A DNA stretch of 63,597 nt, the filler included, from Pelomyxa schiedti (Eukaryota; Protista; Evosea): the NCBI GenBank assembly GCA_020536535.1. It is 14 parts of 14 records of this genome, joined end to end, with 100 filler letters (N's around TTAATTAATTAA, not from the genome) between each part and the next. Parts side by side here need not be neighbours in the genome. Positions count along the whole stretch, not along the records: positions 36,722 to 53,592 come from JAHLWZ010001138.1; 13 more parts are not named here. One strand, 5' to 3'. The position numbers and the translations under genes are program-made. Of this stretch, positions 36,622 to 53,692 are shown piece after piece. The notes below the pieces were generated by a model. The model did not search any database, had not been told where the DNA came from, and saw only the letters and a list, made by a program, of their open reading frames with translations. Each line of letters opens with the position of its first letter. Position 1 is the first letter of the stretch.

Positions 36622-36790
36622 NNNNNNNNNNNNNNNNNNNNNNNNNNNNNNNNNNNNNNNNNNNNTTAATTAATTAANNNNNNNNNNNNNNNNNNNNNNN
36701 NNNNNNNNNNNNNNNNNNNNNCCCCCCCCCCCCCCCCCCCCCCCCCGCGCGCGGGCCGTTGTGAACTAGCAATGTTGACTGCTCTCGTAG

Positions 36791-37271
36791 AGCCCCCCGT
36801 CATGACGGGAAAAGGACTTGACAGATAGACAACGCAGAAACGTACAACGTTTCAAAACTGAACTTCAATATTTGTAAGTTCGTTTTTTTTTTTTTCTTTC
36901 TTTTGTGTTGGTTAGTAAATACACTCACGTTTGGGATTCAGCAAACCAACAGTCATCGAAGTGAGCGGACTGACAATTGGGGCAGTGTTCTACGACGACG
37001 AAGGAATTGAGCTCAAGACCATCCAAATGGACACTTTCGATGTCGGCGATATGATCTACACTTACACGAGTAACGGATTCGTATATTGTCCTCCTGGGGT
37101 ACTTCTGTTTTGTTCTCTGCTTTTTTTTTTTGTTGTTGAATCATTTCACTAACATCCTGGCAGGTGGATTGCCCTGATGTTCCAGACAAATTCCTCGAGG
37201 AGGAGCCCGAAGAAGAACCCATCGATGTTGCTCCACCCGTCCCCGCCGACGAGAAAAAGGAGGAGCTGTGA
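36791..37271 (+). CDS. Candidate ER selenoprotein, SelM/Sep15-like thioredoxin fold (Sec TGA 36803-36805); first exon missing at the scaffold edge
   Basis: Exons 36791-36873, 36942-37098, 37164-37271 give SPPS(U)REKDLTDRQRRNVQRFKTELQYFKPTVIEVSGLTIGAVFYDDEGIELKTIQMDTFDVGDMIYTYTSNGFVYCPPGVDCP...KKEEL*; TGA aligns with the paralog Cys. Confidence 0.8.
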
Positions 37272-37372
37272 CACAACATGTAGTTGTGTCCTGAGGCTGA
37301 GACCTGTGTGCAGTGCCGCGATTCAGTGAGGTTTGCCAAAGTATATGAAGATGAGTGGGTGGGAGTTTTGGC

Positions 37373-37473
37373 CACAGCAATTGAGTGCAATGTGACGAGC
37401 TGCTGACATCAACACATTTCTGTGGTGACAACAGTACTCTGATGTAAAAGCGGTGCAAAGAACCTTGCTGGTG
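37373..37473 (+). promoter_or_regulatory. Putative type-II SECIS element
   Basis: G-TGAC (37392-37396) and TGAT (37440-37443) core, imperfect helix II, AA at 37411-37412, CACA-tttc-TGTG apical mini-stem, CACAGCAA/TTGCTGGTG lower stem. Confidence 0.7.
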
Positions 37474-37662
37474 CCTCTATGCGTTGCAGGCAACATAAGA
37501 ACATACACCGCGTGCACCCAATTACCAAACACCAATATTCCTTCATTCACTCTCCCATAGTCACTGAAAGTTACCTCACAATCACGCCACTGTACCCACA
37601 GGATAAGGAAAAAAGGAAAAAAGGAAAAAAGGAAAAAAGGAAAAAAACCCAATAGACAAAAC

Positions 37663-40532
37663 TTATGCTAGTTTGAATCTCTTTGGAAGTAACCTTCTCA
37701 ACAGAAATACGGAAACTATAAGACCAGCAAGGGCAAGGCAACCCAGTATGAGAAATACCCACTCTCTGACAGGATCGTCCACTAGGAATATTTGCATGTA
37801 CAGTCCACCCCAGCTATTGTAGTTGAATTAGGAGGTTTTAGGGGGTTATAATTATTATGCGGAATGAAATTAACTACTGCCGGGGAAAAAGAGTTGACTT
37901 ACTCTGCTTCTGCCCATGTTGGCTCTGATAAGTTAACAATTTTCCATTCTGAGGAGCCGGTGTCATACTCAAAAGCGGGGCTAATAGCATCATGATAGAA
38001 TACTGATGCTTGCATGCAACGGGGTCCAGTTGGGTCCCCCGCACATGTCCATCCCTGTGCGGTTGTGTGGGAATGTATTGTGGGATTGGGGGTAGAGTGG
38101 AGATAGCGACTTACATAGGGACACTGGCTCTGTTCAGTACAGTTTTGTCCGATCAGGGAAGCAGTTTGCCAGTAGAGAAGGTTGAATATGAAAGTTACTG
38201 GCAAGCTGATAAAGTAAGATGTGGCTGAGTAACCAAAAACGCCAACATAGTAGGATGGTGTTGCACTCCCGGATAGTGTTCCTGTCAAAGTTCTTAGTAT
38301 TATTCGAGTGTGCCGGAATAGCAATTACCGAGAAGGGATTGAATGAGCGGGCATTTCCAATCTACAGTGAGACATTGCCACAGTTGTGCAACCTAGTTTG
38401 CTGTTAAAATCTGCTCCTATATTGTTCTGGTACCAGTTCGCAATCAGCATTGATAGAATCAAGAAGAGCAGCAGGTGGCTCTGCCCCATTTGTGTTGTTC
38501 CAGGCTATTGTAAACAGTGCTCGTGATACACTCGTTGCTATGCTGCACAGTAGGCTGGAGTAAGCCGTCGTTGTATTTGTGGTGTTCGAGGTTGTGTTTG
38601 TTGTATAATTGGTGACTACAGAGATATCAGTGAGGTTGTAGAAATCACTCCTATCAAATTGGGAGTGATAGTAAGTAGTGGCGAAAGCGGAAGAGTGATC
38701 GGCCAGTATCACAGTGGGGAGTGCCGGGTTTTGTTGAAGGAAAGGAGTGGCAGGAGTTGGGGGAACTTGATTTCCAGTAGGTGAGTTGAGACCTACAGCT
38801 GTGAAAGTGTAGTTGTCCTAATGGGATCGGGTGAACCCCATAAAGGAGTTGTAGCACACGTACATTACTTTGGGAGGATAGTATGTTAATTATTCGATTA
38901 GTGTCATCTTGATTGTCTGTCTGATACAACCATATATTTGGTTTGTCTGATTATGTTAAATAATGCCGCACTCACATGGAGCGACACCTTGTGTTAGAGA
39001 CTGGCCTATCTGTCCAATATCTATAACCATTTTGATGTTGTCTAACTTAATTTTTGTGAACTCAGTGGATACAGCGAAGGGATCATTGCATTGGCCATAT
39101 ATTTCATTGTCATACTGTTGGCACTGCAATGCTTAAATTAAAAATGTGTGTCAAGAGGAAAAACCTCGAAGTTTTGCAAATCGTGAACAAGTTTCCTGGA
39201 CCCAAGGTATCCATAGGTCTCGCCATTAAAGATTGCGAAGACAATATCATATGGAAGATTCGACAGCTCAGCCTAAATGCATTACTCGGAGGTATGCATA
39301 ACGCAATGCACCTTGACTTGTTTCAATGCTAGCTCGGCGGACACAAGTGCTATAACGCCTGCGATATTACCCATCCCAGGGGCATGATTGTGGAACATAG
39401 ATGTACTATCAATGGTCGAAGTCTTGTGAAACTTTAGGTTGGTAGAAGTCGAAGATGGCATACAACTAGGATGATTGGTTTCGGTGCTTTCGAGGAGAGG
39501 GGTTCAAGTGTACTCCATATACTTTTTCCTCCGAGGGGAAGGCAAAGTCCTGTGCGATTTCAAGGGGAGAGACAAGTTACTGGACCGTACCTCTCCTCAG
39601 GCATGTGATAGTGTCATCAGCCCCGTACATGAAAGTGGAGATCCCTGCGCCCCACTTTGGGTATTTGTCATTATCCCTGTTATATTTCGCCACCTGGAAG
39701 GCTCAATAGGGGAAAAAAAGAGCTGCCATACACTACGTATAGACTCAGCACTAGAAGAGCTCAGAAACCACATTGGAAAATTGAAGCTCTGGAAAATTAA
39801 GCTGTCTCCCTGGAGCCAATGAGATAAGACAAATCTGGAAAGGGATACCAACGGATTCCACTCATATGAAGACCAAGTGTTCCATTTTGAATTAGGAACT
39901 GTTTCGTCGGAACTGCTGCCTTTAAAGAAACAAAGGTAAACGGAATAAACTTGATACTTTAAGTACCAGCAGGTGGAGGTGGGCCCTCGAGTACAATAAT
40001 ACCCGTAAGGTCACCTCTTTTTAGTGTATCTATTGTATCCCTACGGTAAGGAAATGAGAAAAAAAAAGAAGAACCGAAAAGAAAAAAGTGGCCAATACCG
40101 AAAAAACAAAGTAGAGTCTAGAACCACAATTCCATTCCCTCCATTTGCGAATCTATCCACATCTTCCTGCGATTCAACCAAAAATAGTTCCCCCGAGACC
40201 TGCCTCCTCCCCTCTGGTTTTTTTTTAAAAATTATATTTTTGTTCCGTCTTAAATCCCCTGCACCCAGACATGCAAAAAAAGAAAACCGAAACAACCCAT
40301 AATGAAAACAAAGGGGAGCAGGCTCACCGGTGGTGCAACCGTATTGCCCATCTTTGTCCATGATTAGCACGCAGGGGTCGCCATTCCACCCCGTGTATAT
40401 CAGGTCATGCACGTCCTCAGTCGTGGTGTCCTTGGTCCCAATGGCCCCCTCAACCACTGCTCCCATAATAGCCAGCATCACACCCACAACACCAACGGCA
40501 GTGCACACCGCCCGGTACGGCCACAGCACCAT
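37663..40532 (-). CDS. NCSTN: Nicastrin (gamma-secretase subunit), many introns
   Basis: Signal peptide; LIY...PCVLIMDKDGQYGC; WNPL-GDSLIFQSFNFPMWFL; QLPPTP; YYHSQFD; YHDAISPAFE; PTWAEA-xW...IFLV then a single TM helix and short basic tail. Confidence 0.9.
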
Positions 40533-40823
40533 CCCTCAAATTTGTGTGGCTCGTTACAATCAACTGGCCAAAACTGCGAAAGGTTGAACGAGATGCTGGG
40601 AGCTCGGCTCTATAAAGAGTCATAGAGTGGAGACTGAAGGATCTCCATTGGTCATCAGTTTTCCAGTGCTGGGAAAAGTTCCACGGTTCTCTGTGCCGGA
40701 AACCGATAAAAAGCCACGTCGACGCATCATGCACAACAACCACTTCCCCAATTCCATGGGAAAATTCCCTTTTTTACCTTGCGAGACACACGAACAATCA
40801 AAAGGCACAATCAGTGCAACGCA

Positions 40824-41488
40824 ATGGCAAATGTACTACGGGTTGTTGTCTGTGCTGTAGTGGTGATGGGGCTCTTGTGTTCAGAGGCGCAGGCGGATTT
40901 GGTGGACAAAATAGCCTACGGTGTTTTTAAGGTGCGCCAAGTAGTCTTTCTTTTGGGGCCACGCGAGGTTTTTGGTTTAACTTGGATTTTTTTGTATGCA
41001 GACTCCACCGCCATGCCGTATACATGACTTGAGTCCAAGACTGCTGAAAGCAGTGCAACGATTCGGCAGTGAGATTAAGTACTTGTATGAATGCCCCTTT
41101 TCCCTTTCTTCTCCACGTGATACTTATTGACTGACACATTCAAGCAAACCGACAATCATCGAGGTGAGCGGACTGACAGTTGCAGCAATGTTCTATGACG
41201 ACGAAGGAATTGAGCTCAAGACCATTCAAATGGACACATTTGATGTAGGTGACATGATCTACACTTACACTAGCCACGGATTCGTTTATTGTCCTCCTGG
41301 AGTGGTGTGCCCCCAGCCCATTTCATTACTGTTACTCGTGCATTGTAAGCCAACCTTCTGTTTTCCAAAAAAAAAAACAGGTGGACTGCCCTGAACCAAT
41401 CCACGTCAGTCCCCGTTGGAATGATCTACCAGAAGAAGCCAATGAACCGGCGGCGGAAGAGGCAACTGATGACAAGCACGAGCTATAA
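40824..41488 (+). CDS. Cys-containing paralog of the SelM/Sep15-like ER protein
   Basis: Four exons: signal peptide MANVLRVVVCAVVVMGLLCSEAQA, GVFKTPPPCRIHDL..., core near-identical to 36942-37098, C-terminal KHEL. Confidence 0.85.
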
Positions 41489-41661
41489 CACCCAAGATTT
41501 CGAAAAGAAACAGTTCCCTAAGCGAAGCTTCACTTAATCCACATCGAGAGCACTGTGAGAATTTATTTATTTTCAACTTTTCCTTGGTGGGGCTTTCGGG
41601 GTACAGAATTAAATTAATCTCAACGCGTACGCGTACCGGTTGGATAACGCACCACAGCGCG

Positions 41662-44600
41662 ATGTCATCTACAGCAGCAGCAGCCAACACACGACGCCAA
41701 AACAAAAACGCAGCGGATGGGAGTAGCTCGTCGGCTGGAAGAGGCGCGGGTGGCCACGCAGCGGGGGGGGTGGGCATGGAGATGGAGATGGAGATGTGGA
41801 CGTGGGGGTCCAACGGCAGCGGGGAGCTGGCCCGCTCCCTGTGCTTCACTGCATCATCATCATCATCGGGCGACACGGACACGGACAGCGCAGGAGCAGG
41901 GAGCGGGCCCCGGTCGTCGTCGTCGGCGGCGGCGGCGGAACAACTGGGGGGGTCAAGGACTGATGATGGTGGCTCCAAGGGCGATACTACACTGGTTCGT
42001 GGAAAATGTGTCTGTGTGCCTGTGTGCCTGTGTGCGTGTGCGTGTGCGTGTGCTTGTGTGTGTTGATAATTACTATTATTATTATTGACATACAGTATTG
42101 GATGTGCTGAAACATAACACACCCCCACATTAACATCCTCATCATCATCTGAATTGAACGCGTGCACTACCCCCACAAGAACATTTATATGTGTCCCGTT
42201 TGTGATGGGCACTTAGGGGACAAGGATTGCAAAGCCGGGTTACGTTAGCCTTGGGAATGGCGTGTTTGCGCAGTCAGTGTGCTGCGGGCAAGGTCACACT
42301 GTGGCTCTGGATACTGTGGGCCGAGTGTGGGCATGGGGTGCAAATGAATTTGGTCAGCTTGGGCTCGGCACAAGGGTTCTTTACCTTCGCCATGCATTTT
42401 TGTACAATAACTTTTGCTTAAAAGATTGCTCAGAGTGAACCTCAGCCTGTTGACTCTTTAGAGCAGACCGTGAAGATGATTGGGTGTGGGTTTCGTCACA
42501 CGGTAGCACTGACCCATACGGCTCAAGTATACACATGGGGTGAGGGTGCATATGGGAAACTTGGCTTGGGAACTTTTCCTACTTGCATGGTAAATATATT
42601 TTTTCCTCCTTTGACTTTCATTTCTCAATGTAACTACAACTACAGCCTTCTCCAATGTGCGTTGAAACACTGCCAAGAGTGAAGGAAATCTTTGTTGGTG
42701 CCCACCAGAACGCCTGTGTTGATGAAGATAATGGTGTCTACACATGGGGGTGGAATGGAAATGGTCAACTTGCTCACGGGTACCTTCCATTTATCCATTT
42801 TTGTCATTTGTCAATCTTTCAAGGTTCATGACAGATCCTCTCTCTGGCTTACCTACCCCCACTCGGATAGGAGACATTAACAAGCGGGTTGTGGACCACA
42901 TTGACAGAAGCATGGAAGGTATTCGTTTTCAGATCCGATCTATTAAATCAATTGCACTTACGAGTAATGAAGGAACTAAGATGGGAGAGCAATGGGATAG
43001 ATTTATCGCCATCTTCAAAGATGTAGTGGATGGCGAGACTGATAAACTAGCCAAAGAACTTCTAAGAGTCCATTTTCAACGGAGTGAAAACTATACTAAG
43101 AAAGAAGAACAAGTGAAGGTGTGCAATGCAGATTTCGATAGTTCTTTTTCTAACCTCATTAGATGATCAAAGATGTAGTTAGACTGGGAGCTCATGATGA
43201 ATTGTCCTCACGTCTCCTAGAACTCCTTGTTAAGACATTCCACGTTCACAAATACTATCAGAAAGTTCAGCACGAAAAAAGTGCTTCTGATGTACTGTTT
43301 ATTGCTCGTTTTGCTGTTCTTGATTGAATCAAAAGCTCATCTTCAGCCAAATTGCAATTGGAGAGAGACACATGGCAGCCATCACCCCAGAGGGAGAGCT
43401 GTATTCCTGGGGGTAATAACCATGATATCTACTTGGACTTAAAACCTCCTAGATGCAATCTGAGTGGGCAATTGGGAAGAGCAACAGAACACGCAGACTC
43501 GCCACTGCCTGCGCAAGTCGATTTACATGGCGTGACTTTTGTCAGTATATCTTGATTTGTCCCCTTCCCTCATTTAAATTGTAGGTATCATGTGGACTCG
43601 CTCACACAGCCGCTGTGCAAGGAGGTAGCGTTTTTTCTTGGGGACATAACGAGGCAAAAAGATTGGGCTATGAATCACCGGTAACCAATTTATTTTCTCT
43701 CTGTTTAGTAACTTGTGCAGGCCACACAACAAAAGACACCAAAAGCAGTTATTATACCTCTGCCTGCATCACAAAGCATCACGTCCGTTTCCTGTGGCGA
43801 ATTTCACACAATGGCTGTTACAAATACAGGAAGAGTTTGGGCCTGGTGACATCTTTTGGAAAGACTTCCAATTGGCTTAATTCTTTGTCTTCAGGGGCTA
43901 TAACAACTATGGACAACTTGGGAACCCCATCACTCCCGATGAAGTAATAAAACCTGTTGGTCACCCCCCAACAATGGTTGCCACTTTAGAGGATGTCCAA
44001 GGCATAATATGCGGAAATACTCATAACGTCGCTCTTCTGAGAAGCGCAAACCTCATATTTCAGTTATGCAGAGATAATAACCTCCAGGTACCAATTTTCC
44101 TTATGGTAACATCGAACTTATCAATATAGATGGTTCAAACAGTTTCGCAGGCTGTTGGGGCAGGGAGGAGGGACTCGACAGGGAAATCTCCCCTTCACCA
44201 CGCTGTGATATATGGTAATCTGGAAATTGCACAGTACCTGGTATGCCACGAAAATCTAGATGCTGCGGATAACCAAGGTGCAACTGCTTTGCATTGCAGT
44301 ATCGAGTCTCGTACTATGCCTTGCACCAAGTAGTTTCGCCTCTAGAAATGGTCTGAAATAATCTCACCTTTTACAAGACTTCTTGTCCAATCAGGATGTG
44401 CACTCAATATAGCAACAACTGTTCATAGTGACACGCCGTTGCATCTTGCAGCAAAGGCCCACTACTTCGATGTTGTACAGTTTTTAGTTATGGCAGGCGC
44501 GGCACCCAATCTTTCCGACTCTGAAGGGAAAACACCTCTGCAGTACTTGACCAGTGCTGAGTGTGCAAGTGTAAACTCTTTGATCGAAAGGTGGTTCTGT

Positions 44601-46048
44601 GCCCTTCTTTTCCTTTCTTAAAGTGTTCATAGTGCTGATATTGTTATCATATGTGCTCCTGCTGAGCAAACGTTCAGCAGCAATTTAGCAACAGTTGGTT
44701 AAGTAGCTTGTCATCTCTACTTACTTTTTAAAGGCTCTTCGAAACTACCGTTTCAAGGTGTGGGCTGACGACACTCCTCCTGGCTCAGATTCAGATCCTT
44801 CTTCAATTTCTTCTTCTGCAGTGGCACGAAGAATTACACGTGCCCGAGTGGTAATTTGGGTTGTATCCAATACTTCAGTTCTTTCTGAAAGATGCCGGCG
44901 GCACCTCCAAACTGCCACACAATTGTCCAAGCTCTTATTTCCCATCTGGTTTCACTATATAACCCATCTCCCACCTGATGTGGAACACCTGATTTTCAGG
45001 ACGCAGCTTGTCAACTTTAGTGGATCTGTATGTCCCTACTTGTATTACGCAAAAAAATTACCCAATGGCCTTTAGATTACCTTTAAAGAGGCACTAGCCA
45101 AACTTGTTGAAGGAATCCAAAATGCATTGGAAGGCCGAACAACAGTGAAAGTCGATACGGATGCCGAACCTACTCTTTCTCCTGAGGAGTTACAGCTAGA
45201 AACTTCCAAAATGGAAACTCTGATGTCAGGTTACTTACTGAGTGCCACTTCACACTCTCTCGGCTCAACACAAATCAGAAATTTCCTCCAAACCGTACAT
45301 TTTTATGTGCTACCATTGGTCAGACAAAACCAAAGTGCAATCACTCATGGATAGGCTTTCACAATACCATTTCTTATGCTACCCTGGTTCCAACAAAGTA
45401 CATGACGTAGCGGTGCGGAAAATCCACCCCCAACATCGTTATCCTAACTCTCTCATCTTTTCCCTGAACAGAGAATCAGTAGTGTAATTATTGGAAGCAG
45501 CATATTTGTGCTATGCCTTTCCCGCCGCTCCGTCAACAATCCCGACATCAGAAATCAACTCGCGCTGGCCGAAAACAAGAACATCATCATGGTACCTCCC
45601 TCTCCCAACATATCCCACTCCACTGAAACCAAACCAAATTCCGCATTCCGCATTTTCCGCATTCCACCTTATGCATTCCACCATTCCCGACCAGAACAAT
45701 TCCCATTCCACCCTCACCTGCATGTAGTTCCCGGTTCATTTTCAGAAGAAAATACCGGTTGATCCGGGCATGCAATACACCCTAGCGCGAGCACCCAGTT
45801 TCGTGTACAACAGGCAGTCGCCCGACTCACTGGGCACCCTCGTCGCACAGCTATCTGACGCCATCACACTCAGCACCAGGGTCCAGACATCCGAGGCCAG
45901 CGTGGTCACTCTCGGCGATGACATCACTGCAACGACAAACAAGGTGGCCGAGGCGAAACAAACACTGGCCAGGCTCAGGTCAATCCTCGCGGAGATGGAG
46001 AGAACCAAGAAGAAGAACGCAAAGGCACATGGCGTGGTGAATGACTGA
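41662..46048 (+). CDS. RCC1 repeats + ankyrin repeats + two TIR-like domains + coiled coil (TirA-like architecture)
   Basis: WTWGSNGSGELA, CGFRHTVAL, VYTWGEGAYGKLG; GKSPLHHAV, DTPLHLAA, GKTPL; TIR1 ~44632-45030 and TIR2 ~45295-45860 (YIFMCYHWSD...IFVLCLSRRSV). Confidence 0.8.
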
Positions 46049-46239
46049 CAAGAAGGAAGGGAACCCCAACCAGAAATGTTGAAAGAGAGCAACATAAGTG
46101 TAGCAAGAGAAGAAATTTTCCGGAAATGTTTGTTGGGAGCGTGGGAAGAGGAAGAGTGAGTGTTGTGTATGTGGTGAAGAGAAAGAAAAAGAGATAGGAG
46201 TGCACGAGCCAAAATGTTTCACAATTGACAACCTATCTT

Positions 46240-47162
46240 TTATAAGTAGTGTGGGTTCCTGGTCTTGGGGATGAGGAGCATTGTCCTTTGGAAACAGCGG
46301 ACCTTCTTGCCACCAATTGTGAGAACAATTTTGCCCCTGTTGGAAACATTAGTATATGGATTGCGGAGTTCAGAAGAGTGGTTTCCGTACTTGGAAGCAT
46401 AGCCGTAGCGGCCAGAAGTGAAAGCGGTGGGTCGGCAAGTCCAACCAGAGCCGCAAACTGAGAGTGACACGGGCCTTGATTTGGCAACCCATCTCTTGAT
46501 CTCAACAGCCAACTATTTGGTGTTTAAGTAACTGGATTTAGCATATTATCCGCTTGAGTATACAGGTTAAATCGATATGAACTTCGGAAAAGAAAGCAAA
46601 AAAAGGAGGGTGTGGGTCTCACCTTTCTCAATTTGGGAGCGGGGGCCTTGGCCTTGGTGGCCTTCTTCACAACTTTCTTCTCTCCCTTGACAGTCTTCTT
46701 CACCACCTTCTTGGGTGCGGGCTTCTTCTCACCAGCCTTTTTGGGTGCTGGTTTCTTCTCGCCTGCCTTCTTTGGTGCAGCCTTCTTCTCACCGACTTTC
46801 TTGGCCGGTGCCTTCTTCTCAGCTGGCTTCTTCTCACCGGCCTTCTTTGGGGCAGCCGCCTTCTTCTCACCCGCCTTCTTTGGCGCCGCAGCCTTCTTCT
46901 CGGCTGGCTTCTTCTCACCCTCCTTCTTGGGAGCCACTTTCTTCTCACCCTCCTTCTTTGGCGCCGCTGCAGCCTTTTGCTTTTTCTCAGCAGCTGGCTT
47001 CTTCTCAGCGGCTGGTTTTTTTTCTGCTGCTGGCTTCCTCTCGGCAGCTGGTTTCTTCGCAGCGGCGGGTTTTTTTTCAGCAGCGGGGGCTGCGGCTGCG
47101 GGCTTTTTCTCGGCCGCTGGTTTTTCAGCAGCTGGCTTGGTTGTTGTTGGTTTAGCCGACAT
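46240..47162 (-). CDS. Histone-H1-like Ala/Lys/Pro-rich protein with a ~90-aa non-H1 C-terminal domain
   Basis: Exon 47162-46623 (PAAEKK, APKKAGEKK repeats), intron 46622-46513, exon 46512-46240 in frame. Confidence 0.8.
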
Positions 47163-47401
47163 GGTGGATCTGTCTAGTCACAAAAAAACGCGTGCTGGTG
47201 TCGCACTTCCGGTACCGCGTCGCGCAGCGATGAACGAGAAAAAAAAGATCTTTCCTTTCTGTTGTTGCTTCTCGATTTTTGTCGTCTCTACGTAATTTCT
47301 GTCAATTGCATCACTCCCACTTCTTTCCCGTTTCTATTCTATCGTTCAATTCCCCTTCCGTGAAACCGAACCAGTACTGGTATTGCAATTTCGCGCCTTT
47401 G

Positions 47402-48645
47402 ATGGTGCGGTGCGCAACACCTCCCTCCCTGCCCCCCTTCTATACCCTAATCCTCTTCCCCACTATATGTTCCCAAAATTCTCACCCTCGATTCCAGGGT
47501 AAAGTTACACGCAGCAGAACAAAGTACCACGCCCCGGCCGCCAGGCTCCCCCAAGACCACGACGGCTACGACTCCTCGGGCAACGACGACAACGACGATG
47601 ATCCGGCGCGGGCCCAGGCGGACTACATCTCAGTGGTGGGGGGGCGGCTGGCGGGCCCCAGGCACCCGGCTCCTGTCGCGGAGCCAGGGCGGCTGCCGCC
47701 CCCGCCCGCGCCCCCGGGGTCGCTGTACGGCGGGGACGGCGGGCCCCTCGACGCGGACGCGTTCGCCAAGCGGCACGGCGGGGGCGAGGCCGGCCTCATG
47801 GCCTTCATCAACGAGAGGGAGCAGCTGCTCAAGAGGCAGCAGAAGCTCACAAAGAGAATGTCCGCTGCCGCCGCAAAGTCAAAGCCAAGCAGGGCACGCG
47901 GCGTGACGTCATCATCATCGTCATCGCAACTGCAGGAGGGTGGTGGCGATGATGAATCGAGGAGCGGAGGGAGGCATTCTAATAAGCAGGCTAGGAAGGC
48001 TGCTCGTAACGAACGCAGGCTCAACTTTTTGGCAAGTGAGTATTCCTATGCCTAGTGTTAAGTGACTGCGAGAATTCTAAGCTTTTATCTGTCTTGGACC
48101 TGAAATACTGGATTACCACTAAAAGCCATTTGAACAGAGTTGGAGGCATCAAAGGGCGTGCAGCAAGAAGAGGAAAGTGCAGAGGAAGATGAAGAAAGCG
48201 AAGATGTTAGTGATGATGATGAACAAAACACAGTCACAACAACCACACAAACCCCTGCTGTTGCACGGCCGGGGAAGGCAAAGAAACCCACCTCACAGCG
48301 AGGAGCAAAAGCGAACACAAAATCAAGCAAACTCAAACTCAAACCCAAGTCCAAGTTCAGCTCAAAGAAGCAGAACACAATAGCGTATGCAACAGTTGCT
48401 TTTTTTCAAATACCGAATTTTAAATTAATGCAAATTGATAATTGATTTAAATATTGATAATTTAAATGTAGAAAGAGGGAAGTAAAAGCAGTCAAGAGTG
48501 TTATGGCCTCTGCAAGCTTTCAATCTGACCCGATTCAGACAGCTCAGGTTTCGTTAACCTTAAAAACTATTTGACTGCCTAACCTCCCAACTAGGAACAT
48601 ATTATGCAATTTTTATCTGAGCAAGGAGCCGGAAGAAGGCATTGA
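47402..48645 (+). CDS. SLX9: SLX9/FAM207A-like ribosome biogenesis factor
   Basis: ATG-only first coding exon then GKVTRSRTKYH; C-terminal REVKAVKSVMASASFQSDPIQTAQEHI fits the SLX9 terminal motif. Confidence 0.7.
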
Positions 48646-48673
48646 GAAACTGTGGTTTTTTTGTGAACTAAAG

Positions 48674-49723
48674 TCAAGTATTTTGTTCCGGGACTTGTTC
48701 TGGCACCTTTTCTGGTGCTTTTTCTCGTTCTTGTTCTTGTTGTTGGTGATTTTTCAGTGCTTCAAGGAAGTCTTCTAGAGCACCAATGATTGAAGGTACC
48801 CAGAGGTTTTCAGTCAGAGAGTGCTTTTTGCAAAAATCAACAGACATCTTTTCAAGGTCATCTTCCTTTTGGAAGGGTTAGAGGGAATTTTGGATTTTAA
48901 AGAAAAAGGTTACAGGAGTAGGACGCAAGTAGGCAATCAGATTTTCAGTCTCAATCTCTATGGCTACCCCTAGAAGTTGTTAGATATTCCCAAGTGGAAG
49001 TGGGGAGGTACCCTTGTCAAAGTCGTAGTCTTCATCTTCCTCATTCTCTCCGTCTGCCGTTTCGGAATGTTGTGTTGGTAGTGAGTTGGAAGCCAATGGT
49101 TGTTCTGGTTGCTTGCCGGTTGGGACAGAGTCAGGGAGCTGTGTTGTGCTTGAAGCGGGTTGCGCTTGAGTGGATGTAGTATCCGGTGTCTGAGTTTGTG
49201 GTGTTGTAGCATCCACAGAACATTCTGTAGTTGGACTCTTTGCTGAAGTAGTAAGTTGTGAAGAAGCAGCAGCAGTAGTCGAAGTGCCATCCGCATCCAC
49301 ATTCAATCCCGAAGCTTTATTCTCAGCAGCCGCGGATTCCGCACTGGAACCCAGAACCGGAACCGTCGGCACTTGCGCAGTCGTCTCCAACGGCGTGGGT
49401 TCGGCAGTGTGGTCAGGTTCCCTCTTGGGAGTGAGGCCCGGCACGTGCCGCACGGGGGCCCTGCCCCTCCCTCCCCCCCTCGCCCTCGTGGCCCCTCCCC
49501 TCACGCCATCCCCCCCGCGTCCTCTGGCCGCCTCTCCCACTCCCACTCCCCCTCCTCCTCTGCGGTCTCTTGCTGGGCCGCCCCCGTACGATCCGCCGGG
49601 GAGATACACACTCTGGCCCGGGGGTATGACCCCGGGCGTGTAGATCGACGTGGCGCGCCCGCGCGACGACGGCGGGTATCGACCCCTGGGGTTGTACCCC
49701 GACGGCTGCGGGGGCATCATCAA
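48674..49723 (-). CDS. Hypothetical protein with RGG/Pro-rich N-terminus and small C-terminal domain
   Basis: 247-aa ORF plus two downstream exons ending VPEQNT*. Confidence 0.6.
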
Positions 49724-49847
49724 GCTTGATTTTTCTTCTCAAAAACTGAGAATGGGGGATGAGTACGACATAGTGGTGTACGAAGACTACCCAGGTGTGC
49801 AATTTCTAGCCAACTCGTACCGGCGCTCAGTATTATAATAATGCCCA

Positions 49848-52786
49848 CTACCCACAAACCAAGGTGCTCCGCCACCAGCCACAACAACAACAACCAACAC
49901 GGAATACAGAAATACCGAAAACGAGAAACGGAATCCCTCCAAGTTCATCTTCGTGAGCCATCTTTTTAATTTTTAGGAACAGTTAAAATTGTGTCACTGG
50001 GAGTTAAATACACGTGTTAGTTCCGCTATGACTTCTTCCATTCGTTCTCGGTCATTGGAGTCAATCACCCATATGCAAGCTGTTGTATTTTGGTAGTCTG
50101 TGCGCTGAGATTAGTGGGAATCCGGCACTAGAACTACTTACAATGCCTCCACAGGGGTCTAATTTTATCCTCTGCATTTTTTTTTTAATTACAGGTACTT
50201 TTAATTTTTTTTAACATGCCTCCCCCGCAATCCTGGATAGGAATGTAAGTGGTTGACACATAACTAAAATATGGAAAGAAACCCAAGAAATAATCTTTAT
50301 GTTCTTGGAATACTGTGATGTCTCAATATCTACAGTTCATATGAAATTTCATGGAAAGAAAAGTAAGTGCGAACTGAATCCAATTGTAGGTATCGTGGTC
50401 TCTGGTATAATCTTCAGTTTGTAAAGAATCGTAGTTTTCCCTGAAGTCATTAAGGAGAACAGATAATCATAAAACTGTGGTGCCTGCTGCATCTAGTCCA
50501 TGCATAAGTATCCGCATCTCAGGATACGAGGAAATCATCTTAGATGTTGATGAACCCCAACCTATCTTGGCAAGAAAAGATCCAAAGAAGCCTGTATTCT
50601 CAGGCTGGGGGACTGTCTTTACCTTTTTTACAAGTTCCATTGCTTTACTGTGTACACTTAGAAATCGTCAACACAAAAAGAATTGACTTCGATCCAAAGG
50701 CATTCTTCCGAAGTCTCTTGGTTTCCCGGAGAGCAGTGAAAAAGTGCTGTTTCCAATTCTCAGATTTGCTTAATACACTGTGGTGAGGAGGTTTCTTTCC
50801 AACAAATAAGACACACACCATATCTGAATGGAGCCTATAGATTTTTGAATCCGGGGGTCCCATTTTTCTTTGAGATATAAGTCCTGCCATATCCTATTGT
50901 CCGATGCTACAAAGAACATAGCACGGCATGTTTGCGAGACTGAGCAAAGTGCTTCATAATCAAGCAATCCAATGATCATACTTAAGGAAATAATCCAATG
51001 AGTGGTGGAATTTTAAAGTGACTGGGAGGTCTATTTTACGCACAGTAAGACATCAATGGGACATGTACTAAAATTTCCTTTTTTAGGTCAGAGGAGAGTA
51101 AAAAAAAAAAGAATAAAATCTACCAAGGGATATGAGAGAGGATATCCCTCCACTTAAAACCGGATTGGTACAAGGAATATCCTCCTCAACAACACATGCA
51201 CTAGAAAGCCAGCCACATGCAATGGCCAATATATTTTTATTTGCCAGTAATGGTACAGCCGTAGGAGTGTTGCGGTCGACTTGATCTCCAACACCTTAAG
51301 GCAAGTAAGGTCAACGGAGGAATCATGAAAAGAAATGTTACCAAGCTGTCCTTGATCATTTGAACCCCAGGCAAAAAGAATCCTGGTCTCACTCAGAGCA
51401 AGTGAATGTGCACTACCGTATGCACCACCTGCAGCAATTTGGCTGATGCGCTCAGATTTTAGAGATAAAACAGGTTTTGGAAGATTGCTATTGATATTAT
51501 CCCCGGTTCCAAGTTGTCCCTTCCTTGGAGGAAAGTGAAGAACACCCTTAGGAGGTAAAATCCACACTTATTTTCGCCAAAGGCAAACAACGATCCTGTG
51601 TCTGTTGCAACGAGGGAGTGTTTATCACCACACGCAACTCTGGTTACTCTCATTCCGTTGAAGTAAGATACTACTTTTGGAGAGGAGTGAGAACACTATG
51701 GAAGAGTCAGTTGGGGAAAGATGGTTGTGATAACCTCATCACCGTGTCCTAGTGAGGCCATCAAAATCATTGTCAAAATACAACAGTTGTAAGTTTTGTT
51801 TTATACCGAGTTGGCCTTGGATTCCAGAACCCCAGCTGTATAGCTGCCCGTTATCCGCAACTGCTAGTGAGTGCTTCCCTCCTGCCGCCACGAACGAAAT
51901 GTGAATTTCAGGTTCGAAGTTGCAGGGGACAAATTCGAATCTTTGTCCCATTAATTGTAAAGCCAAAAGTCAGAAAATACAGTTAACCTTTCTTTGGAAT
52001 CACCAACACCAAGCTGGCCCATCTCATTTTGCCCAATGGCGCGCAGTGCACCAGTGTTCGAAACAACTAAAGTGTGGAGTGCACCAGCAGCTATTTGTAC
52101 TGGTATTTGATCTGCGGAAAAGTAAGTTCTTGAAAGTTGCGGAAATATAGAAACCAATGTAAAATTGAGCAGGTTGCAACAATGCAACGCGGGCAATACG
52201 AGAGGGATTACTAAATGTTGGAGAGTCAAGGTCCCATCTACATGCACACTGATCACTTGAAGACATTGCCCAGGTACTTAGAGCCCCACACGAAACACTT
52301 GGTGTTGGGTGAGGATTACAAAATTTTTTTTTGTTTGTTTGTTAGATTACGGAAAGAAGGAAACAAAAGGGGGCACACTGGGTACCTTGTAGTTTTAGCA
52401 GAACCGAAAACCAGCCACTCAGGGGCACCCGTGGCATACAATCCCCCCCACGTGAATACCTGCCCATCGATCACTGCCGCCATGTGCCTATCATATCATG
52501 ATTTGTTAATTACAGCGGCACTTTCCCCCGCACCCATAACAGAAAAACCACAGGGGGGGGGGGGGGGGGGGGGTGGCCACGCGCATACCCGCCGCCGCAG
52601 GATATCCCCGTGATCCTGCGTGTTGCCCCAGAGATGCCATCCACGACCACCGGCTCGCTCCGCCCCGCCCCCCGTGGATGACGACGAGCCCAGCTGCCCG
52701 TGGCTCCCGCACCCCCACGTGTACACGTTGCTCGTGCATGCCCTACTAGTAGAACTACTCGCACGCGCAGGTCCTTGCTGGCTCAT
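49848..52786 (-). CDS. RCC1 repeats + F-box + ARF-like GTPase fusion (ARF apparently truncated; 3' end uncertain)
   Basis: VYTWGCGSHGQLG and further RCC1 units; IIGLLDYEALCSVSQTCR...[59 protein letters not shown]. Confidence 0.8.
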
Positions 52787-52922
52787 GGAAAACCCGCTCT
52801 CATTTTCCCACCCCAATCGCATTCCCCTGGACGCAATGGCGGAATAAAAAAAAACTAGGCGATAACGGAAATGGCTGCGTTCGTCGTCGAGCAATTTTCT
52901 CCGAATCAAAAACTTGGAAACC

Positions 52923-53300
52923 ATGTTTTCGTGGTTCAAGTCACTCAGGGGGCCACGTGTGGGACCCGATGAGTGGTTCGTTGCCGCGCTTGCTGGCGAC
53001 ACCGACGCACTGCGGCGTATGCTGGCCGGCGACCCCGACCTGCTAAACTCTGTAACCGACGAACGACAACGAGTGGTGTGAATGCGTGACAACTCTTTTT
53101 TTTTGTTCACACGATAGTAATCGTTTTGCGCGGGCACACACACACGCAGACAGCGTTGCATGCAGCCACGTGGACAGGGAAACCACAGTGCGTTGAGTTC
53201 CTGTTGTCACAGAATGTCGATGTCAATTCTCAGGTTTAAGGGCCCTTACTTTGAGGCGCTCACTCACAAACTTGTATCTCTCACTTCACAGACTGTGTGT
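52923..53300 (+). CDS. Ankyrin-repeat protein, 3'-partial
   Basis: WFVAALAGDTDALRRML...TALHAATWTGKPQCVEFLLSQNVDVNSQ; divergent from the RCC1 gene, ~135 bp apart. Confidence 0.75.
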
Positions 53301-53365
53301 AATACTATCCTGATCATGCTTTCACTTCCTTTCCTCTAAAAACTAATCCAGGGGGAGCCTGTACG

Positions 53366-53591
53366 TTTTTATTGCGTTTATTCATCAATTTCTGACTTGC
53401 TTCAATTTCTCTCTCTTTGCTTCTCTCTGTGCAATGTTTAGGATGTGTGTAACTTCTCCCAACCCTTTTTCATTGCGTTTATTCATCAATTTCTGACTTG
53501 CCTCAATTTCTCTCTCTTTGCTTCTCTCTGTGGAATGTTTAGGATGTGTGTAACTGCTCCCAACCCTTTTTCATTGCGTTTATTCATCAAT
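53366..53591. repeat. 101-bp tandem repeat (>2 units) running into the scaffold end
   Basis: ATTGCGTTTATTCATCAATT at 53371, 53472, 53573. Confidence 0.9.
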
Positions 53592-53692
53592 TNNNNNNNN
53601 NNNNNNNNNNNNNNNNNNNNNNNNNNNNNNNNNNNNTTAATTAATTAANNNNNNNNNNNNNNNNNNNNNNNNNNNNNNNNNNNNNNNNNNNN

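Follow-up and report, generated by a model that had tools for sequence, protein, structure and literature searches.

A very probable ER selenoprotein of the Sep15/SelM group in Pelomyxa schiedti, with an in-frame TGA opposite the cysteine of a nearby paralog

Introduction

A TGA triplet within the reading frame of an apparently intact gene might be a lesion, an error of the record, or a codon for selenocysteine (Sec). This question is raised by a locus of Pelomyxa schiedti—an archamoeba, as had been assumed from the start—on JAHLWZ010001138.1 (assembly GCA_020536535.1), where two related genes, here called gene A and paralog B, bear TGA and a Cys codon, respectively, at the same place. All positions are those of the window, i.e., the whole stretch of DNA (63,597 nucleotides, filler included), in which this record occupies 36722-53592. 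The original prediction, made from the sequence, read gene A as a hidden ER selenoprotein. In our assessment, gene A very probably is an ER selenoprotein, namely a divergent variant within the Sep15/SelM group that carries a single Sec.

Gene structure of the two paralogs

The elements of both genes, and the gene that lies between them, are the following:

36722-36746: poly-C contig end; the TGA of gene A lies 81 nt from this end
36747-36790, + strand: gene A intron 1, 3' remnant, with acceptor AG at 36789-36790 (from sequence and from loose contig ends in runs X3 and X5)
36791-36873, + strand: gene A exon 2, 83 nt, with the putative redox loop S-P-P-S-U
36803-36805, + strand: gene A in-frame TGA, codon 5 of exon 2, the presumed Sec codon
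36942-37098, + strand: gene A exon 3, 157 nt, predicted C-terminal half of a SelM-like thioredoxin fold; spliced in X5
37164-37271, + strand: gene A exon 4, coding part, with the second Cys of C-P-P-G-V-D-C, acidic tail, KEEL and stop TGA
37272-37592, + strand: gene A 3' UTR, its extent set by contigs, which mark neither end nor strand
37392-37443, + strand: candidate type II SECIS of gene A
37663-40532, - strand: nicastrin gene (gamma-secretase subunit), the first called gene on the contig
40824-40931, + strand: paralog B (Pelo_16507, KAH3732657.1) exon 1, with a signal-peptide-like N-terminus
41002-41084, + strand: paralog B exon 2, 83 nt, with TGC (Cys41) at 41014-41016
41145-41304, + strand: paralog B exon 3, 160 nt; joint seen in X4 and X5 and in the annotated protein
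41381-41488, + strand: paralog B exon 4, 108 nt, ending KHEL-TAA

The TGA at 36803-36805 aligns with the TGC at 41014-41016, as predicted: after its TAG acceptor, exon 2 of gene A reads S-P-P-S-TGA-R-E-K-D-L, and exon 2 of paralog B reads T-P-P-P-C-R-I-H-D-L. This exon has the same phase in both genes, exon 4 comprises 108 nt in both, and all introns of the two genes are GT-AG. The match of exon structure that had been claimed hence stands for the length and phase of exon 2 and the length of exon 4, but not for exon 3, whose 160 nt in paralog B versus 157 nt in gene A result from the B donor at 41305, adding one Val. Homology was expected on both sides of the TGA and is present there, with nine of nine residues identical in the tail of exon 1 and 47 of 52 in exon 3. 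Gene A carries no further stop or frameshift and ends in KEEL, in agreement with the prediction; paralog B ends in KHEL, and its product (P0001) comprises 152 aa. Exon 1 of gene A lies off the contig, its last nine codons being known from the loose ends of RNA-type contigs.

The public annotation of the contig holds no called gene at 36791-37271, which leaves gene A without annotation in this record—it was indeed missed by gene predictors, as had been suspected, yet it is transcribed and spliced.

As to the surroundings, the nicastrin gene between the paralogs is expressed and intron-rich and lies tail to tail with gene A. Further along, there are two RCC1-repeat genes (41662-46048, + strand, and from 49994 onwards, - strand), of which one has ankyrin repeats, while a single called product of the other combines F-box-like and Arf domains. 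The called gene at 46240-47162 (- strand, 252 residues) has no Pfam match and a Lys/Ala/Pro-rich repeat N-terminus of K-K-P-A-A-E units; from its sequence, the product resembles a ribosomal protein extended by a histone-H1-like part. No tRNA genes were found in the JAHLWZ010001138.1 piece.

Expression and splicing

Expression was assessed on assembled contigs, not reads, including those of a DNA-type run (X1), a single-cell RNA run (X3) and a spliced run from a different study than X3 (X5). Contigs of X3 and X5 cover 36789-36873 and extend upstream as loose ends, which in frame read D-K-I-A-Y-G-V-F-K—the same nine residues that close exon 1 of paralog B. Seven of these nine codons differ silently between the genes while every residue is identical; therefore, gene A has its own exon 1. 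Splicing in both runs uses the acceptor at 36790, upstream of the TGA, and the presence of the TGA-bearing exon in spliced RNA-type contigs bears out the transcription that the prediction presupposed. Skipping of the TGA via an in-frame AG at 36814 was considered and rejected, as no contig uses that acceptor.

At the other end of the gene, a spliced X3 contig reaches 37592 and thereby spans the SECIS candidate, and an X4 contig reaches 37600. One X3 contig bears an extra A at 37253, which would frameshift the last codons and remove KEEL. This insertion is probably an amplification slip, since it lies in an A-run and is absent from X1, X4, and X5.

The TGA itself might stem from faulty base calling or assembly close to the contig end, with gene A being an ordinary Cys (or Trp) paralog. 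Its closeness to the poly-C end would fit such an error, as would the zero depth of the DNA-type run X1 at 36750-36913, TGA included; moreover, differences near contig ends may go unlisted, and the TGA lies ~15 nt inside the aligned contig piece. However, the site is covered by two RNA-type contigs, each from a study of its own, and no alternative letter is listed in either of them—a TGC at 36803-36805 had been named as a refutation of the prediction. An error would also leave the SECIS candidate and the match to a selenoprotein family unexplained, and we consider it very unlikely.

Selective constraint

Neutral divergence after the TGA had likewise been named as a refutation; purifying selection was found instead. 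In exon 3, the two genes differ by 13 silent and five conservative changes (dN 0.043, dS 0.54; silent versus replacement, Fisher p=6e-7). Beyond the TGA, exon 2 shows more divergence (dN 0.52, dS about 1.4-1.5, p=0.07), and the coding sequence after the TGA with exons pooled is under purifying selection with p=4e-6. This excludes an old pseudogene, though not a very recent one.

Such a recent pseudogene would derive from a Cys protein by a TGC-to-TGA nonsense change, would still be transcribed, and would be followed by a hairpin that is a chance product or a relic. The Cys codon is one step from TGA, pairwise dN/dS is blind to a very recent loss of function, exon 2 is far more diverged than exon 3, and the additional A in one X3 contig would shift the tail. 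The last point is weakened by the position of this A in an A-run and its absence from X1, X4, and X5. Furthermore, all three SNPs of X3 in gene A are silent, and the sole lesion in 115 codons would have hit exactly the Sec column of the family described below. Together with the SECIS-like hairpin, which is found behind gene A but not behind paralog B, these observations make a pseudogene improbable, and a functional gene with a recoded TGA remains the preferred reading.

Within exon 3 (36942-37098 versus 41145-41304), the two copies share an identical run of ~30 nt, and this exon is altogether much closer between the paralogs than exon 2. Two of the X3 SNPs, at 37038 and 37050, carry the letters of paralog B. 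Gene conversion between the exon 3 copies of A and B is possible on this sequence pattern.

A candidate SECIS element

The original prediction invoked a TGA/Cys pair plus a SECIS as the signature of Sec; the pair stood, whereas no SECIS had been located. A candidate is now placed at 37392-37443 by a custom pattern scan of both strands, which asks for a RUGAN core, AA 10-14 nt further on, NGAN, at least 8 pairs, and an energy cut-off. In 2 x 16.9 kb, the strict scan yields this hairpin as its sole match, in sense orientation, 121 nt past the stop of gene A and 454 nt past the UGA in the mRNA; it is also the best match in the piece under relaxed rules. Downstream of paralog B, no SECIS-like hairpin is found even under these relaxed rules. 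When the UTR is shuffled with its dinucleotides preserved, the scanner finds a match in 15 of 1000 cases, a rate that speaks against the chance hairpin which a pseudogene might entail.

The hairpin consists of a G-UGAC core, helix II, AA at 37411-37412, a mini-helix, and an UGAU core, and thus has the type II form. Its core UGAC/UGAU agrees with the published SECIS consensus UGAN/KGAW (PMC3753652). Less regular are the spacing from AA to core of 14 nt with one base bulged, versus 11-12 nt in the controls, the interruption of helix II by a 3x3 internal loop, and a weak helix I (about 37380-37459, five of seven in the strict test, -3.5 kcal/mol). The folding energy of the hairpin is no better than that of shuffles, with z-scores that are not significant.

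As controls for the scanner, 38 metagenomic loci with a SelM-type CxGU motif were used: matches were found behind 12 of them, whereas 60.8 kb of antisense sequence gave no match. An Rfam scan of the locus did not detect a SECIS, which says little, as Rfam detects only two of 20 control SelM loci. A covariance model built from one control SECIS missed the candidate as well as the remaining controls, and MAFFT failed to align the control SECIS elements; hence, these attempts gave no usable SECIS model. The hairpin is probably a working SECIS.

Relationship to the SelM family

Gene A was queried exon by exon, and the full-length tests used the annotated paralog B (P0001). The likeness to Sep15/SelM that had been proposed holds in so far as the protein is collinear with SelM and the TGA falls on the Sec column; the similarity is weak, though, Pfam is negative, and the CxxU motif is not intact. 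In hhalign comparisons with SelM alignments built here, P0001 gives E=7e-4 and exon 3 of gene A gives E=5e-4. The profile score of P0001 is low (3.8 bits) and is equalled by five of 5000 shuffles; in a second shuffle test of the SelM alignment, one of 200 shuffles scores as well. Both hhalign and MAFFT align paralog B with SelM over its full length, with Cys41 falling on the Sec column, and it is via paralog B that the TGA of gene A takes this position. For exon 2 alone, the SelM profile gives no match.

Neither P0001 nor the exons match Pfam, remaining below the PF08806 gathering threshold, while control SelM ORFs reach 51-73 bits; the PDB sequence search gave no match either. In the ESM Atlas, all ten top named matches belong to the Sep15_SelM family or clan (best 0.87), which is a lead only, and exon 3 of gene A alone retrieves no named family. 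The single-sequence AlphaFold model is poor (pLDDT 51), and fold searches with it found no match. Folding with the SelM alignment raises pLDDT to 80, with 2A2P as best match (Z 9.1, rmsd 3.1, 97 aligned)—a circular result, given the alignment that went in. P0002-P0004 were rejected as homologues, being repeat-driven false matches.

In both paralogs, Pro takes the first-Cys position of CxxU. P0001 and exon 2 of gene A also bear neither a CxU motif nor an N-terminal Cys-rich domain. The protein would act in the manner of a SelM-type ER redoxin, but owing to the outcome for CxxU and Pfam, it is not filed as SelM proper. Its putative ER signals comprise the KEEL of gene A and the KHEL of paralog B, along with a hydrophobic N-terminus discerned by eye in B only. 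Searches of 1.8 billion representatives, the 5.8 billion set and JGI metagenomes found no orthologue, and thus none with conserved UGA or SECIS.

Just after the fold, both genes keep an intron-split Cys pair, C-P-P-G-V-(V)-D-C (A, 37087-37172; B, 41290-41389), which none of the retrieved SelM controls contains. Separately, several database SelM proteins among P0005-P0113 have a W in place of Sec (CxGW), apparently a UGA rendered as Trp by gene callers.

Proposed mechanism

From what is known of the family, the following course is the most likely one. The spliced mRNA of gene A retains the UGA as the fifth codon of exon 2, and the 3' UTR SECIS, 454 nt downstream, would recruit the Sec machinery, so that this UGA is read as selenocysteine. 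KEEL would hold the protein in the ER. The Sec would sit at the SelM-like site, between strand 1 and helix 1, and would most likely be the nucleophile in thiol-disulfide exchange, attacking substrate disulfides during folding quality control. With the partner Cys of CxxU replaced by Pro, this implies a single-Sec enzyme or another resolving thiol. Paralog B would then be a tandem duplicate in which Sec changed to Cys and the SECIS was lost.

A further-reaching idea is that these proteins form a distinct subfamily of single-Sec ER oxidoreductases, whose resolving Cys moved from CxxU to the C-P-P-G-V-(V)-D-C pair, and that the SECIS might act on the terminal UGA too, recoding it in part. The stop TGA of gene A is followed by three codons and then TAG (37269-37283), and readthrough would, speculatively, give KEEL-U-H-N-M and mask ER retention. 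The minimum UGA-SECIS distance is quoted as 51-111 nt (PMC3753652); the terminal UGA lies 121 nt before the hairpin, just beyond this range. Taken jointly, we regard both parts of this idea as doubtful.

Probable Sec decoding in the lineage

To our knowledge, the parasitic relative Entamoeba is regarded as lacking the selenium pathway. The genome list of PMC4561486 contains four Entamoeba species, and the name is absent from the SPS alignment of that study, which contains Acanthamoeba, and from those of its supplementary files examined beyond the genome list—indirect evidence of absence, as far as these parts of the source go. For Pelomyxa, Mastigamoeba, or Archamoebae, a literature search of incomplete coverage found no published selenoprotein. 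Within that literature, gene A would be the first one reported for Archamoebae.

Pelo_12686 is listed as selenophosphate synthetase of P. schiedti (PMC10579272 Dataset 2), and the presence of SPS2 tracks selenoproteins across 505 eukaryotic genomes (PMC4561486). On the contig, three of six annotated genes end in TGA; hence, UGA is not generally reassigned, and we reject general reassignment on this ground. More narrowly, the UGA of gene A might be read as another amino acid, by SPS1-type readthrough or reassignment, or gene A might be a decaying ex-selenoprotein in a lineage that is losing Sec. The off-canon features of the SECIS and the lost first Cys of CxxU would suit these possibilities, as would the fact that, of the Sec machinery, only selenophosphate synthetase is documented. 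Yet UGA is a normal stop here, a synthetase is listed for the genome, and the SECIS core fits the consensus. We attach very little probability to these possibilities and retain Sec as the meaning of the UGA.

If this is true, UGA is decoded as selenocysteine in an anaerobic archamoeba, and the absence reported for Entamoeba would go back to a later loss rather than being a trait of the whole group. As the public annotation lacks gene A, it probably lacks the selenoproteome of P. schiedti as well. The tandem Sec/Cys pair, in which only one copy is followed by a SECIS, would provide a natural comparison of the benefit of Sec without its usual partner Cys. The surprise is limited, since the recoding mechanism is established knowledge and other amoebae, like anaerobes, are documented to use Sec: five selenoproteins with type II SECIS occur in Dictyostelium (PMC2375036), selenoproteins are also present in Acanthamoeba (PMC4561486, PMC8038987), and the Sec pathway is found in anaerobic Spironucleus and Preaxostyla (PMC6397501, PMC10703272).

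Comparison with known systems

The closest known system is SELENOM (PF08806 Sep15_SelM; PDB 2A2P, mouse SelM), with which the paralogs share the putative Sec or Cys after strand 1, a GF motif after the last helix, and a tail with a putative ER-retention tetrapeptide; paralog B is moreover collinear with it over the whole length and has a short N-terminus that looks signal-like by eye. Unlike SELENOM, they bear PxxU instead of CxxU (S-P-P-S-U in A, T-P-P-P-C in B), a five-residue insertion after the motif, and the Cys pair after the fold. The first Cys is kept in 53 of 53 SelM controls with that context, a set biased by its retrieval through the CxGU pattern. Identity to SELENOM amounts to about 12-27%, which is below Pfam detection.

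Sep15 carries CxU and an N-terminal Cys-rich UGGT-binding domain and is not known to have a KDEL-like signal. Like Sep15/SELENOF (PDB 2A4H), gene A would belong to the same fold family and have an ER role, and Sep15/SELENOF is the known amoebozoan representative of the family, being present in Dictyostelium (PMC2375036). In contrast to Sep15, paralog B has no Cys-rich domain, and A and B both end in xxEL.

Fep15/SELENOE of fish is an ER protein of the Sep15/SelM family with Sec but no known motif Cys, and it ends in RDEL. SELENOE has been mapped to jawed vertebrates (PMC13134290). Hence, the likeness of gene A to SELENOE—compared by description only—would be a convergent one.
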